Below are positions 7,843-52,087 of a DNA stretch of 64,000 nucleotides, one piece after another. Made by a program: the position numbers and the translations under genes. The stretch is from Octopus sinensis (taxonomy: Eukaryota): contig NC_043010.1 in assembly GCF_006345805.1 (NCBI RefSeq), forward strand, positions 29,636,001 to 29,700,000, given 5' to 3'. A model generated the notes under the pieces. That model was not told where the DNA came from, ran no database searches, and saw nothing but the letters and a program-made list of their open reading frames with translations. Position 1 is the first letter of the stretch. Every line of letters starts with the position of its first letter.

Positions 7843-10281
7843 ATGCAACCTGCTGCTACCAACTTAAAGGTTCCTGCACCCGGCAGCACATTCACACATT
7901 CAAATGACTTCAAAAACAACAGCGGTAGTGAAAGTGATGATGATAGTATTGATGGCAATACTGATGGTGTTAGTAATGGCAGTGGTGCTCCTGGTAGTGG
8001 TGGTGGTGACGGTGGTGGTGGCGGTGGTGGTGGTGGTGGTGATGGTGGTAGTGGTGTTGTTGATGGTACTGGTGATAGTAGTGTTACTGGTGGTAATGGC
8101 AGTGGTGGTGGTGATGCTGGTGGTGGTGGTGGTGGTGGTGGTGGTAGTAGTGGCAACGGTAGTGGCAGTGGAGTTGGTGATGCTGATGCTGCTGCTGCTG
8201 CTGGGCCATCTCCAACTATCTCACCCCCTACAATTTCCAGCCCTCCTAATTTGCAACCTGGTGCACCTACTTCTCCACAGAACAGTCACTCTTCCTCATC
8301 ATTATCACCTAGCAATAGAGACAGTAGCCCTAGCAGCAATCCCAAAGTCATGTACTCCATGCCATCAATGTATTCCTCAGTAGGAGCATCTATGCCAATG
8401 GGATTAAACAACAACCAACATCAGCTGCTCAACAGCTTCTTCAACCAGGATTTCTACTCTGGCCAGTCTCAGTCAGGAGCCACGTGTTCTTCCACTTCCT
8501 CTATGCTCGGTTTACCAACAGGCATGATCTATCCATCTGAACACTACACTAAATGTTATCGTCGGAGTTTCAATGAACGGAAGCCTTACAAATGTGAAGT
8601 TTGTCGGAAAGGTTTCTCACGGAGGGTAAACCTAAACAATCACGAAAAAGCCCCAACAGGGGAAAAGCACTTTTATTGTGAATATTGTAAAAAAGCATTT
8701 GCACAGAGGGCTCACTTAAAAACTCATGAATTAACCCATACTGGAATTAAACCTTACACCTGTTCCTATTGTGGCAAGATGTTTGCACAGAGAGCCAACT
8801 TTGATAACCATCGGAGAATACACACGGGGGAAAAGCCATACCACTGCAATTTCTGTGAGAAGTCTTTCTCACAGCAAACCAACCTAGACAACCATGAACG
8901 AACACACACAGGATTGAAACCTTACCGCTGTGAATTCTGCTCGAAATCTTTTTCTCAACGTACTAACTTAGATAACCACAAACGTATCCATACCGGTGAT
9001 TTGTTTCGTTGCTCGTTTTGTTCAAAACCGTTTACACAGCAGATAAATCTACGTAACCATGAACGTATTCATACCGGCGAGCGACCGTATGCATGTTCTT
9101 ACTGCCCTAAAGCGTTCTGCCAACAGACAGAACTTAAGAACCATGAACGCACACATACAGGCGAGAAACCATTTATCTGCTCTATTTGTATGAAAGCATT
9201 TAGTCAGCAAGGTAACCTGAAAATACACATGCGAATACACACAGGGGAAAAGCCATTTGTGTGTGATATCTGCTCCAAAGCATTTAGCCAACGTACTAAT
9301 CTGGACAATCATAGACGTATTCACACAGGAGATATGTTTAGATGTAGCTTCTGCTCGAAAGAGTTCAGCCAACGTGTGAACCTGCGTAATCATGAACGCA
9401 TTCACACAGGGGAGAAGCCATTTAATTGCTCTGTGTGTTCAAAGTCATTTAGCCAACAGGGAAACCTCAAGAACCACTTGAGGACACACTCTGGTGAGAA
9501 ACCTTACAGCTGTGAACTATGTGGGAAATGTTTTGCTCAGCGGACCACATTAGATAATCATTTACGAAGTCATGCCCTTGCTGCAGCAAAGCAACAAGCT
9601 GCTAGAGCTGTTCCAAACAATTCACTTGTAACAAATACTACCAATCCTATCAACAACAACAACAGCAGTAGTAGTGGTGGTGTTGGGGTTGGTGTTGGTG
9701 TTGGTACCAATAATGCCAGTAATAATAACAACAGCAGTAATACCGCCAACCACAGTCGTTCTAATGCAAACCATCCCCATGGCAACCATGGCCCTCCAGA
9801 TAGCCAAGCTTTTAACAAGTCCTTCAACTGTGATATCATTGTTCCAACACCTCCTATATCTAACCGGGGTCTGTCTGGGATGGGCGAAAACTCCAACTAC
9901 AACCACAGCACAGGGGGAAATCATAATAAAAACAGCCTTAAGAGTTCCGACACCAACCAATCACAACCATTGAGCCATCCTCATCACCAATACTCCTCTC
10001 CCCACTTCCTCTCACACTCCACACACCCACTGCGTTCACATATAGATGATGACCGCAATCTGCGGGAGTCACAAAGTGGGGGATTCCGGCTGCAGCCACC
10101 TGCTGTGTCCTCCTCATGGTTAAACTCTGCCTACTTGCAGGAGATGCCTGCAAACTGGGAAAGTAACTACTTGTGGTCAAGAGGTTTTCCTATTGCCCCG
10201 ATATCATCCAGTGGTTGGAATAATGTCACAGCTGGCCTCTCATGTGGGAGGAAACTGAACAGATCTAGAGATCTTTGCTGA
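7843..10281 (+). CDS. C2H2 zinc-finger protein (ZNF-A), 812 aa. Gly/Ser/Asp-rich N-terminus, 12 tandem fingers (8587-9573, finger 1 lacking its last His), Asn/His-rich spacer, C-terminal WSRGFP motif
   Basis: Uninterrupted ORF with repeated C-x2-C-x12-H-x3-H and TGEKP-type linkers; upstream splice acceptor; no KRAB, SCAN, BTB or ZAD domain recognised. Confidence 0.95.
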   Translation: MQPAATNLKVPAPGSTFTHSNDFKNNSGSESDDDSIDGNTDGVSNGSGAPGSGGGDGGGGGGGGGGDGGSGVVDGTGDSSVTGGNGSGGGDAGGGGGGGGGSSGNGSGSGVGDADAAAAAGPSPTISPPTISSPPNLQPGAPTSPQNSHSSSSLSPSNRDSSPSSNPKVMYSMPSMYSSVGASMPMGLNNNQHQLLNSFFNQDFYSGQSQSGATCSSTSSMLGLPTGMIYPSEHYTKCYRRSFNERKPYKCEVCRKGFSRRVNLNNHEKAPTGEKHFYCEYCKKAFAQRAHLKTHELTHTGIKPYTCSYCGKMFAQRANFDNHRRIHTGEKPYHCNFCEKSFSQQTNLDNHERTHTGLKPYRCEFCSKSFSQRTNLDNHKRIHTGDLFRCSFCSKPFTQQINLRNHERIHTGERPYACSYCPKAFCQQTELKNHERTHTGEKPFICSICMKAFSQQGNLKIHMRIHTGEKPFVCDICSKAFSQRTNLDNHRRIHTGDMFRCSFCSKEFSQRVNLRNHERIHTGEKPFNCSVCSKSFSQQGNLKNHLRTHSGEKPYSCELCGKCFAQRTTLDNHLRSHALAAAKQQAARAVPNNSLVTNTTNPINNNNSSSSGGVGVGVGVGTNNASNNNNSSNTANHSRSNANHPHGNHGPPDSQAFNKSFNCDIIVPTPPISNRGLSGMGENSNYNHSTGGNHNKNSLKSSDTNQSQPLSHPHHQYSSPHFLSHSTHPLRSHIDDDRNLRESQSGGFRLQPPAVSSSWLNSAYLQEMPANWESNYLWSRGFPIAPISSSGWNNVTAGLSCGRKLNRSRDLC

Positions 10282-11744
10282 TCCATGTCATCCATTGTGA
10301 AATGTCCATGTTAGAGATGGTGATTGTATCTAACAGATTTTTGTGGCATTTGTCAACCCTTGTCTTATTTTCATACACACGCATACACATCTACTTAAAA
10401 AATACATGCATGTATAAATATATATTCATTCATACTCACTCACATGCATGTATGTAAATATACATAGACACACATATCAGTACATACACACATCCACACA
10501 TGTACACACATCAATGCATACATACATTAGAACATATACTTATTGATTCATCCACACTGATCAATACATTATATACACACACACCCATGCACACATACAC
10601 ACACACACATATATTCATTCACATGCTCCAATACACACATATATACATTTATTTTATGAGTGCATTTGTCTTGCAATATGTATACATACACACAAGTATG
10701 CACTTAGTGATGTTTTGAGCTGTCCATTCTTATTTGTTTAACATATATATATGTGTGTGTGTTTGTGTGTGTGTGTATGTATGTACAGCACTCACACTCT
10801 TCAAGACCTTCACCCTTTCTCTCTCTCTCCTGCCACCTGGACCACCAATAACTAACCCTTCCAATTAGATGTTCGGCCCTCCATTGTTGGTTGCAACATA
10901 CCTGTATCATCACAGATCTGTGAAGTCCTTCTTTCAGGCAGTCTACCATGCTGTTGAGAGTTAGGAAATTGTAGCTCAATACCAGCACTACATAGTGCAA
11001 TCTTCTAATTACCTGAGTAATGCTGTATGTCATGTGAAGAACCTGTTTTGTGGAATTATTTCGATCCCTATGATAGGCTGCAAACCCAGCATTTCAAAAA
11101 CTTCATGTCTGATTTTATCTTCATGATTTTAAGTTCACATTTCTGAGGTGTAAGTTGCAATTGATAAAAAGTATATATGCATATATATAAATGGGTGTGT
11201 GTGTGAGAGAGAGAGAGAGAGAGTTTGTGTTTATCCATTTGTTTAACATCCATTTCTCCATACTAGCTTGAGCTGGACAAATCATACAACTGAGACATTT
11301 TTTCATCAGTAGATGCCATTCCTGTCACTATTCTCTACCAGTTTTGAAGCAAGGGACTTTTTATTCCACACATCTTTGAAAGGAAAGTGCTAGCAAATGA
11401 TTTGTTGACTGGGAGTGCCAAGAAAACGCCATTTTTGGCTCAAAATTTTTCGTGTGAAAGAAGGAATCCAAGCATTCACACTGACATAAACACACACACA
11501 TTTCAAATATGTGGGTATGTGAATGTATGTATATGCATATAAATACGTACATACATACATACATGGTGGCTGCCCCCTCGTTATCGAGTATGGCCATTGC
11601 ATGAAGCTTCATCAATGTTGTTATCGTGCAATACCTGTGCAAGAAGATTTTTTTTAAAGTGAGGAAAGGCTGTGCACTTAGTCAATCTCACTCACTAAGC
11701 AACAGCAGCCATAATCCGAAAAGAAGAACAAGTCAACATCATCA

Positions 11745-50098: not shown

Positions 50099-52087
50099 CT
50101 AAGAACTGCTGTTTTGCCGAAGTTTCGAAGAAATGCTTTTCGAAGCAGCTTTTTGGCAACATTTAGGTTCCTTCTGCTTATTCTGTTTCAATTCTTGAGA
50201 TGCAGATGTTGAACAGTTTTTAGTAAGTGGACCCCATCTAGGTGATGCCATGGGAAAGCCTCTTGACCAACCATAGTGACTACCCCAGCCTGGAGACATT
50301 GGCGGCAAATAGGTGGAACCCATCAGAGAAGGAATGGCTGCTGGTTGAAACTTCATAGCTGATGAAGACATCTGCATCTGTCGATGTAGATCACTCGCAG
50401 CACCAACATTGCTAGCATCCGGTCCATGCAGGAGCCATAAGCTGTCAAGCCCTGAATCAAGATGTGAACTTGGTGATGTGATACTATTCTCATTGCAAGA
50501 AGATGTTGGCAAAGAACTTGTACCAGAAGATGCCTCTTTCTGAAGTTGTTGCTGTTGTTGTATGCATGCATTCATCCATTTTGAAAACATGCTTGTATTC
50601 TGCTGTTTGCTTGCCATAGACCGTGGGTCTTGCTGAAAAAATATTTCTTCATCCATTGAGCCCTGAACACACACATGGTTATTGAACTGTGACTTCTGTG
50701 AAAACTGTTTTTTGCAAATGCAGCAGAGCAACGGATTTTTATCAGAACTGTTTGATGGTGCTGTAGGCATCTCCACAGCAACACTATTGTTGTTGTTGTT
50801 AGTGTTGTTATTATTGTTGTTGGTGGTGGTAGTATTAGTTTTATCATGATGTTGTGAGCTTGCTTTTGAAGAACAGTAACCATTTTGGTTGTTTGTGGGA
50901 GACTGTTCACTTCTAGTGACTTCCTGAAGAGAATCTATCATATTTGATTTTTTATCCTCATTCTGACATTGCTGTTCTTTCAACAATTTCAAACCATGGG
51001 TTCGCTCATGATTCTTTAAAGTGCTTCTCTGTGAGAAAGCTTTCCCGCAAGTTAAACATACAAATGGTTTTTCCCCAGAGTGAATCCGTTCGTGATTTCG
51101 TAAATTTGTCACTTGACTAAATGCTTTCCCACAGACCAAGCACACATAAGGCTTTTCCCCCGAATGTGTTCGTAAATGGTTTTTCAAATCTGTTCGCTGG
51201 GCAAATGCTTTAGGGCAAACTGTACATGCAAATGGTTTTTCTCTTGTGTGGACGCGTAAATGGTTTCTTAGATCTGTTCGTTGGCTAAATGCTTTTGGGC
51301 ACATCATACAGTGAAAAGGCTTCTCTTTGGTGTGAACCCGTTCATGATTGCGTAAATTTGTCAACTGGCTAAATGCCTTAAGGCAGTAGGAACACGTATA
51401 TGGCTTGATGCCTGTGTGTACCCTTTCGTGACAAGTGAGTTCTGCCTGCTGGGCAAAGGACTTCAGACATACAGAGCAAGTATAAGGTTTTATCCCTGTG
51501 TGAATTCTCTCGTGATTTCGAAGATTGGTCAGCTGGCTGAACGCTTTTGAACACGTTAAGCATTTGTAAGGCCTCTCGCCAGAGTGTATTCGCTCATGAT
51601 TACGTAAGTTCGTGCGCTGGCTGAAGGATTTGGAACACACCAAGCAAATGTATGGCCTCTCCCCACTGTGTATACGTTCGTGATTGCGCAGGTTTGTACG
51701 TTGACTAAATGCCTTTAAGCATACAAGACACACATAGGGTTTCTGACCAGTATGAGTCCTCTCGTGATTTTGGAGGTTCACTTTCTGCGCAAATACTTTT
51801 TCACACGTATTACATTTAAATAATTTAGGTGGAGTGTAAGGCATATTACTGCTTTGTCCACCCACAATCTGATTTGGTGCTTGGCTGGAATTTAGCTTGG
51901 TGTTCATTTTCATAGCTGATGTTTTACAGTTTTGAGAAGTTGACAGGACTGATTCTGAGGAAACCATAGTTGGACTTGAATGAATCAGTTTTGAAGTATC
52001 CTGTTTTAAGTTGGCCGGGGACAATGCAAATGTTCGATTGCAGAAATTTCTTTGGGTAGGCACCCCATATATTGGGAAAGGATACAT
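50099..52087 (-). CDS. C2H2 zinc-finger protein (ZNF-B), 662 aa. 10 tandem fingers (51820-50996), poly-T/N spacer, isolated C-x2-C-x12-H-x-C finger, poly-Q, C-terminal WSRGFP motif
   Basis: Uninterrupted ORF with canonical fingers and linkers; splice acceptor 9 nt upstream of the ATG. Confidence 0.95.
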   Translation of the reverse strand: MYPFPIYGVPTQRNFCNRTFALSPANLKQDTSKLIHSSPTMVSSESVLSTSQNCKTSAMKMNTKLNSSQAPNQIVGGQSSNMPYTPPKLFKCNTCEKVFAQKVNLQNHERTHTGQKPYVCLVCLKAFSQRTNLRNHERIHSGERPYICLVCSKSFSQRTNLRNHERIHSGERPYKCLTCSKAFSQLTNLRNHERIHTGIKPYTCSVCLKSFAQQAELTCHERVHTGIKPYTCSYCLKAFSQLTNLRNHERVHTKEKPFHCMMCPKAFSQRTDLRNHLRVHTREKPFACTVCPKAFAQRTDLKNHLRTHSGEKPYVCLVCGKAFSQVTNLRNHERIHSGEKPFVCLTCGKAFSQRSTLKNHERTHGLKLLKEQQCQNEDKKSNMIDSLQEVTRSEQSPTNNQNGYCSSKASSQHHDKTNTTTTNNNNNNTNNNNNSVAVEMPTAPSNSSDKNPLLCCICKKQFSQKSQFNNHVCVQGSMDEEIFFQQDPRSMASKQQNTSMFSKWMNACIQQQQQLQKEASSGTSSLPTSSCNENSITSPSSHLDSGLDSLWLLHGPDASNVGAASDLHRQMQMSSSAMKFQPAAIPSLMGSTYLPPMSPGWGSHYGWSRGFPMASPRWGPLTKNCSTSASQELKQNKQKEPKCCQKAASKSISSKLRQNSSS

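Follow-up and report, generated by a model that had tools for sequence, protein, structure and literature searches.

Accessory modules of zinc finger proteins

Some subfamilies of C2H2 zinc finger proteins (ZNFs) are defined by modules outside the fingers. KRAB, SCAN and ZAD are such modules, N-terminal domains that recruit partners or mediate association. The subject of this text is a module at the opposite end of the protein, a C-terminal motif shared by two C2H2 genes, ZNF-A and ZNF-B, in a 64,000-nucleotide stretch of Octopus sinensis chromosome CM016872.1 (the window, which is 100% identical to assembly GCA_006345805.1 of that species and 98.9% identical to O. vulgaris OX597827.1). The motif is genuine, previously undescribed and conserved between octopus and cuttlefish, and the family that carries it is coleoid as far as named matches go. 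It is probably a disordered, tryptophan- and proline-rich docking peptide for a putative partner, carried by a small and old family; this account is held with moderate confidence.

Pfam has models for KRAB, SCAN and ZAD, all of which fold or turn helical when bound. In contrast, the octopus motif has no Pfam model, is disordered in AlphaFold2 (AF2) predictions and belongs to a small family. Pfam scans of ZNF-A, ZNF-B and the tails of ten family members contain no KRAB (PF01352), SCAN (PF02023), ZAD (PF07776) or BTB domain.

Short peptides that bind partner proteins offer a second comparison. The WRPW/WRPY motifs of Hairy and Runt proteins, and the eh1 motif, bind the WD40 domain of Groucho/TLE. 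The GW/WG W-motifs of GW182/TNRC6, known as Ago hooks, bind tryptophan pockets of Argonaute and CNOT9. Class I ligands of SH3 domains have the consensus R-x-x-P-x-x-P, and EVH1 ligands the consensus F-P-x-phi-P.

The closest analogue in kind is FiNZ, a Glu-rich, N-terminal sequence of 28 residues that is encoded by a separate exon, is found in cyprinid fish only and occurs on about 700 rapidly evolving zebrafish genes (PMC10547256). Like the octopus motif, it is a short, lineage-restricted sequence attached to C2H2 proteins, has no similarity to known domains and was found through its conservation. Set apart by the description of FiNZ only, the octopus motif differs in being C-terminal, in its many Trp, Pro and Ser and few acidic residues (D+E 3.5%), in sharing its exon with the fingers, and in occurring on some 4-6 slowly evolving genes per genome.

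A shared C-terminal motif

The core motif of ZNF-A is encoded at 10084-10218 on the + strand, whose translation is exactly FRLQPPAVSSSWLNSAYLQEMPANWESNYLWSRGFPIAPISSSGW (residues 748-792). It follows the pattern RLQP / S.W..S.YL.EM / WE.NY.WSRGFP..P / W.N. The second copy, MKFQPAAIPSLMGSTYLPPMSPGWGSHYGWSRGFPMASPRW, forms residues 578-618 of ZNF-B (50234-50356, - strand). When the two tails that follow the fingers are compared by BLASTP, the motif stretch alone aligns, with 22 of 51 positions identical (E=1e-8). Their Smith-Waterman score is 129. Shuffling the ZNF-B tail 2000 times gave scores of 48 +/- 8 with a maximum of 92, none reaching 129.

Both tails are low in complexity and rich in Ser and Asn, so that the likeness might be thought a product of chance or of composition. 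That explanation is already refuted and keeps virtually no probability, given a z-score of about 9.9, the shuffles and BLASTP value above, and the independent finding of the motif in other species, where it occupies a matching position.

The sequence-only reading had described a motif of about 40 residues common to the two genes, between low-complexity flanks that could not be aligned. The sharing is real, at exactly the coordinates given, and the flanks do fall outside the BLASTP alignment. The length of 40 residues holds for the core. The conserved block as a whole is longer, continuing on the 3' side through W.N and S-C-x-x-K..K.

Across the family the block comprises 45-65 residues, rich in Trp, Pro and Ser, with the pattern [FL]-R-L-Q-P ... 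S-x-W-[LM]-x-S-x-Y-L-x-E-M ... W-E-[SN]-N-Y-x-W-[SP]-R-G-F-P-x-x-P ... W-x-N ... S-C-x-x-K..K. It usually ends some 20-50 residues before the stop. In ZNF-A it extends to the last codon (10278), the continuation (N-x5-7-S-C-x-x-K/R..K/R) being encoded at 10219-10278 (+). The final residues of ZNF-A before its stop, SCGRKLNRSRDLC, parallel those of the family member P0006, SCSIRPNKPRDLN. In ZNF-B the motif with its continuation, which runs to residue 638, lies at 50174-50356 (-).

Distribution of the motif

The distribution rests on an exhaustive HMMER search, in which a two-sequence profile was compared with 1.84 billion representative proteins (E<=1e-3). The library includes the NCBI proteins of all three Octopus species. 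Ten of the 13 matches are true, corresponding to about ten clusters at 50% identity; each has the motif at its C-terminal end, and every full-length one is a C2H2 protein. The low-scoring matches P0005, P0011 and P0012 are unrelated repeat proteins.

In Octopus sinensis/vulgaris and O. bimaculoides, the matches are the ZNF-B orthologs and a gene named "ZFP2 homolog" (P0008/P0020). Argonauta hians contributes P0013, and the cuttlefish Acanthosepion (Sepia) pharaonis P0002, P0007, P0009 and P0021. Further matches are contigs derived from the Sequence Read Archive (SRA); two of the SRA runs carrying P0003 are larval RNA-seq of Sepia esculenta (PMC10442824, PMC11917092). All motif carriers with a species name are coleoid cephalopods. 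The two-sequence profile is near its detection limit with P0013 (E=5.8e-4), the member that diverges most, so the family count is a lower bound. Despite this limit, a motif present on the large clusters of the cephalopod C2H2 expansion would have been detected.

The 120 best relatives of full-length ZNF-A were also scanned with a local family hidden Markov model (HMM), which scores ZNF-A at 109.5 bits and ZNF-B at 95.5 bits. Only P0034 (an 807-residue O. bimaculoides protein named "ZFP2"), P0004 (near-identical to S. pharaonis P0002), P0008 (Octopus) and P0086 bear the motif, and none of the approximately 110 vertebrate and insect ZNFs among these relatives does. The window and the retrieved loci contain no further copy except one new one, on S. 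pharaonis contig L011. A word-indexed protein search gave no candidates for the two-sequence tail alignment and P0003 alone for a ten-sequence alignment; this index misses proteins known to be present and was left out of the claims on distribution.

No described domain matches the motif. Pfam finds only finger families in full-length ZNF-A and ZNF-B (E<=1) and none in the tails of ten members (E<=10). A profile search of the PDB found no relative, its sole match being an agarase at E=0.4, a chance hit. A string search of a library of papers returned zero occurrences of WSRGFP and LWSRGF.

Family architecture and gene neighbourhood

To judge from these sequences, the motif appears to be the C-terminal signature of one small, old C2H2 family, so far found in coleoid cephalopods only. 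Members begin with a MY..P.(M)Y motif, followed in most by a degenerate first finger, and then by 9-14 tandem fingers, a long low-complexity spacer and the block. Both ZNF-A and ZNF-B have the three elements that define the family, namely the MY..P.(M)Y motif, the tandem C2H2 array and the C-terminal block. The first of these is N-terminal in all full-length members, ZNF-A alone having it internally, and apart from it the region before the fingers consists of low-complexity sequence only. When nine full-length members are aligned, the invariant columns outside the fingers are M1 and Y2 together with Q, W, Y, W and R of the motif. Because the N-terminal start and the degenerate first finger are common to the members, these appear to form one old clade.

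There are at least four paralogs in Octopus (ZNF-A, ZNF-B, P0008/P0020 and P0034) and at least five in Sepia. In O. bimaculoides, ZNF-B, P0008/P0020 and P0034 lie on chromosome CM046614.1, at 30.0, 4.98 and 3.39 Mb respectively; in O. sinensis, ZNF-B and P0008 are likewise on the same chromosome. On contig L011 of S. pharaonis (CAHIKZ030000917.1, 8001-35994), two ZNF genes with the motif lie 29 kb from each other. One of them, gene 2, is a clear ZNF-B ortholog, with a MYPFP start, near-identical fingers and a matching isolated degenerate finger. Thus, a family pair that includes ZNF-B adjoins in both octopus and cuttlefish.

Some members show peculiarities of their own. The protein P0007 (CAE1244983.1, 301 residues) joins the N-terminus to the tail, omits the finger array and overruns the normal stop. 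At its locus (L011 8001-10112), the genomic open reading frame (ORF) is continuous and encodes 703 residues with nine fingers. P0007 is probably a gene-model error; alternatively, it may represent a finger-less isoform. Two further S. pharaonis proteins, P0002 (CAE1165441.1) and P0009 (CAE1144206.1), were named "KRAB" by their depositor. No KRAB family is listed for P0004, a relative of full length, and Pfam finds no match in the tail of P0009, P0002 and P0009 themselves not having been scanned in full; automatic annotation probably produced the name as an artefact.

The pair P0008/P0010 has two features that are absent in the other paralogs. One is a twice-repeated C-[ED]-L-[FY]-x-[KR]-N-P element (RTGCELFTKNPQN; CELFLKNPPLPQPPP; about residues 412-500 of P0008), and the other is a C-terminal KQSK..W....G.H.PSKS block. 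At corresponding sites in ZNF-A, P0004, P0008, P0034 and P0086, several linkers between fingers are two residues short (HTGD-LF-RC instead of HTGEKPY-xC). These family-specific linkers may alter the geometry in which DNA is read.

Age and selection

Over the 41 aligned codons of the ZNF-A and ZNF-B motifs, the proportion of synonymous differences (pS) is 0.69, near saturation, and that of nonsynonymous differences (pN) is 0.32. Since the amino acids are kept while synonymous sites approach saturation, the peptide is what is conserved. Between O. sinensis and O. bimaculoides, the ratio of nonsynonymous to synonymous rates (dN/dS) over the whole gene is 0.03 for ZNF-B and 0.02 for P0008. In this comparison the core motif of P0008 is unchanged, and that of ZNF-B has one conservative T/S change at its edge.

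The same contrast is seen over longer distances. In two pairs that span the split between octopods and decapods (P0008/P0010, and ZNF-B with gene 2 of Sepia L011), the motif is kept whereas the spacer has diverged with insertions and deletions. The ZNF-B/P0013 pair, across the split between Octopus and Argonauta, behaves in the same way. On these sequence comparisons, the family had duplicated before octopods and decapods separated. Low dN/dS, duplication before that split and a common N-terminus together point to a small old clade, unlike the large lineage-specific expansions.

Predicted structure and proposed function

When the 80-residue block was modelled from ten sequences, AF2 gave a mean predicted local distance difference test score (pLDDT) of 56.7 and a predicted template modelling score (pTM) of 0.13, with no secondary-structure elements assigned by DSSP. 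In a model of ZNF-A residues 170-812, also built from ten sequences, the fingers reach a pLDDT of 85-92 and the whole tail, motif included, only 24-31. As modelled, the block neither folds as an autonomous domain nor packs against the fingers. The sequence-only reading had offered docking and dimerisation as functions; the lack of a predicted fold speaks for a docking peptide rather than a structured domain for dimerisation. The core consists of 7.7% W, 13% P and 17% S, with 3.5% D+E.

Two structural identities were considered and rejected. A WW domain has two Trp about 20 residues apart and then a Pro; here the spacing shifts from 17 to 20 between ZNF-A and ZNF-B, Pfam is silent and the AF2 model has no strands. 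A relic of a degenerate finger is excluded by the lack of any Cys/His pattern in the motif.

Conservation of aromatic, Arg and Pro residues at fixed positions, within a predicted disordered stretch close to the end of a DNA-binding protein, is characteristic of such docks and suggests recruitment of a partner with folding on binding. The motif most likely binds a partner. In the proposed mechanism, the block would be a composite dock of short linear motifs for a putative partner protein, probably a transcriptional co-regulator. Anchored by the invariant Trp, Tyr and Arg side chains and by a turn at R-x-[FY]-P-x-x-P, the block would fold only upon binding, and the partner would thereby reach the target sites of the fingers on DNA.

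Known short linear motifs were sought in 13 members with regular expressions, and their matches are leads only. WRPW and eh1 illustrate the kind of mechanism proposed here, being short, disordered, Trp-anchored and near the C-terminus of a DNA-binding protein. However, the patterns [WFY]RP[WFY] and eh1 (F.I..IL) are absent in 13 of 13 members; the octopus core is W-[SP]-R-G-F-P and the block is much longer. GW182 resembles the block in having several Trp with small or polar neighbours, about 6-14 residues apart, in a disordered region. A Trp with a small or polar neighbour on each side occurs in every one of the 13, with two or three such Trp in 12 and one in P0009. The difference is that a literal GW or WG occurs in six members only, and that Ago hooks conserve little besides the Trp whereas the octopus block conserves its surroundings.

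The likeness to SH3 and EVH1 ligands lies in R-[GAS]-[FY]-P-x-x-P, an R..P..P sequence of the SH3 class I type found at an aligned position in nine of the 13 members, with an EVH1-type pattern there in four. The block is far larger than a PxxP ligand, and four members lack the last or the central Pro. Two other patterns were rejected: the W-acidic pattern of kinesin light-chain ligands is present in one member of 13, and the LC3-interacting region (LIR) pattern in seven, at no single aligned position.

Several observations weigh against the docking account. None of the 13 members matches the WRPW, eh1, PxDLS (CtBP-binding) or LxxLL patterns, and the scarcity of acidic residues speaks against a classical acidic activation domain. 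The SH3 class I expression is short, and four of the 13 members do not match it. Synonymous divergence in the Octopus motif is unusually low, so that part of the constraint may act on RNA. Finally, some transcripts place the motif-bearing tail in the +1 frame, which means that in some members the motif may be joined to the fingers in another way than assumed.

An example of this frame break is the Sepia esculenta transcript L005. Its finger ORF stops at 2216, and an intact tail ORF with the motif runs from 2140 in the +1 frame, leaving an overlap of 77 nucleotides that contains a run of eight A. The break is reproduced in five independent runs (L005-L009, 99.7-99.95% identical). L010, from one run, has the same +1 relation, with ORFs at 58-1506 and 1472-1942 that overlap by 35 nucleotides. 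An intron was rejected as the cause of the break in L005 and L010, as the candidate GT..AG segments have 22 and 30 nucleotides, too short for animal introns, and the contigs come from RNA-seq. Slippage, frameshifting, a recent frameshift mutation or an artefact are possible causes.

A more specific form of the docking account would make the block a cephalopod-specific, Trp-anchored hook, by which a few deeply conserved ZNFs recruit a protein that has pockets for Trp or a module recognising proline, such as Argonaute/PIWI, a subunit of CCR4-NOT, or a reader of the SH3/EVH1 type. This version is improbable. If true, it would describe an interface between transcription factor and cofactor without counterpart outside coleoids, with a possible tie to the +1 frame break of Sepia.

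Alternative explanations

The block might serve functions other than docking of a co-regulator. Aromatic and Arg residues in disordered tails can be read as "stickers", in which case the block would be an element of homotypic association or condensation; the core does show an enrichment of W, Y, F and R, in disordered surroundings rich in Ser, Pro and Asn, and as four to six paralogs share the block, heterotypic pairing is conceivable. Yet such elements usually conserve composition and not position, whereas here the columns W, Y, W and R are invariant and the spacing from WE.NY.W.R to FP..P is fixed in more than 13 sequences, as is typical of a specific binding interface. Sticker behaviour is therefore unlikely, although it is the alternative given the most weight. 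A signal for sorting or stability, such as non-classical nuclear import, a degron or a modification site, would also be short, disordered and near the C-terminus, and the conserved Arg-Gly, the prolines and the basic K..K tail would suit it. No classical nuclear localisation signal (NLS), PY-NLS or known degron pattern is conserved, however, and 45-65 conserved residues are long for such signals, which leaves this possibility quite doubtful. Conservation might instead be due to an element in the RNA, located where the coding sequence ends (for instance a regulatory site or a structure used in A-to-I editing), rather than to the function of the peptide. The evidence in favour is the scarcity of synonymous changes between O. 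sinensis and O. bimaculoides, where ZNF-B and P0008 pooled show one change in 110.7 sites for the motif and downstream coding sequence, against 62 in 730 for the rest; a sliding window agrees. The low stretches are 50099-50356 (-) of the window and L003 11800-12064, compared with L013 and L014. Opposed to this are the near-saturated synonymous sites of ZNF-A versus ZNF-B (pS 0.69) with amino acids kept, the fact that what is conserved across Octopus, Sepia and Argonauta is protein sequence, and the lack of any Rfam match in the window. An RNA element as the main cause is very unlikely.

The broadest alternative is that of the sequence-only reading, which took the motif for a counterpart of KRAB or ZAD, namely the lineage-specific effector of the C2H2 expansion in coleoids. 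Parts of that reading stand. The motif lacks an annotated-domain match (Pfam at E<=10, PDB profile search), it occurs beyond the two genes (in the HMMER search, the HMM scan of relatives and S. pharaonis L011), and its evolution is purifying and not neutral (pN 0.32 against pS 0.69; dN/dS 0.02-0.03). It is attached to ZNFs, undescribed, conserved and, as far as visible, restricted to cephalopods. Studies of cephalopod C2H2 genes (PMC12513265) and of metazoan ZNFs (PMC10547256) describe no cephalopod accessory domain, the former making no mention of an accessory domain, motif or effector. The role in the expansion does not stand. About ten clusters carry the motif among 1.84 billion proteins, and the four Octopus paralogs compare with 1,453 C2H2 proteins in O. 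bimaculoides (PMC12513265), which puts the motif on less than 0.5% of the C2H2 genes of octopus. Its carriers are slowly evolving genes (dN/dS 0.02-0.03) that duplicated before the octopod-decapod split, unlike the large lineage-specific clusters. The motif is also C-terminal and disordered, in contrast to the N-terminal KRAB, SCAN and ZAD. As an effector of the expansion the motif is largely refuted, and hardly any likelihood is left to this reading.

Layout of the window

ZNF-A (+) and ZNF-B (-) are convergent C2H2 genes about 40 kb apart. Each consists of a single coding exon with a splice acceptor upstream.

The coding sequence of ZNF-A occupies 7843-10281 (+), stop codon included, and encodes 812 residues in which Pfam recognises C2H2 fingers only. 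Its acceptor, a polypyrimidine tract followed by TTGCAG, lies about 40 nucleotides 5' of the ATG. The first 169 residues (7843-8349) form a Gly/Ser-rich N-terminal extension that is absent in the paralogs and is mostly encoded by an imperfect (TGG)n microsatellite, (TGG)54, at 7992-8153 (+). The family MY..P.(M)Y motif follows as MYSMPSMY at 8350-8373 (+). Its first Met, residue 170 of ZNF-A, is the initiator in every paralog, so that it is uncertain at which codon ZNF-A really starts. A search for exactly this protein, at full length and from seven alternative Met starts, found nothing in a collection of 15 billion proteins; the protein may be unannotated or modelled differently.

A degenerate "finger 0", YKCEVCRKGFSRRVNLNNHEKAP, is encoded at 8587-8655 (+) and recurs nearly letter for letter in the Sepia esculenta transcript L005. 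It precedes an array of 11 canonical C2H2 fingers at 8677-9573 (+), predicted by AF2 at a pLDDT of 85-92, several of whose linkers are of the shortened HTGD-LF-RC form. The 3' flank of ZNF-A (10300-10800) is a long CA/TA-rich low-complexity tract with ACACAT-type repeats.

The coding sequence of ZNF-B lies at 50099-52087 (-), stop codon included, and encodes 662 residues. The protein is identical to an annotated one in O. sinensis and O. vulgaris, and its O. bimaculoides ortholog is XP_014775840 ("zinc finger protein 79"). Ten canonical C2H2 fingers are encoded at 50996-51814 (-). The tail contains an isolated degenerate finger, CCICKKQFSQKSQFNNHVC (50669-50725, -), which the ortholog of Sepia pharaonis has conserved.

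Outside the two ZNF genes, the window contains AT/TA microsatellites. Its remaining ORFs of at least 100 residues have no Pfam match.

Significance for cephalopod biology

Cephalopod C2H2 genes have been studied mostly as one large expansion, defined by the phylogeny of the fingers alone. The motif provides a sequence handle on one small clade within them, older than the split between octopus and cuttlefish; how the roughly 1,400 expanded ZNFs act is left unanswered by it. With its location on a single chromosome, a partly preserved gene neighbourhood and very strong purifying selection, the clade looks more like a set of core regulators than like ZNFs engaged in an arms race. As a peptide of 65 residues with four invariant anchors, the block could be used as bait, offering a route into cephalopod-specific transcriptional machinery.

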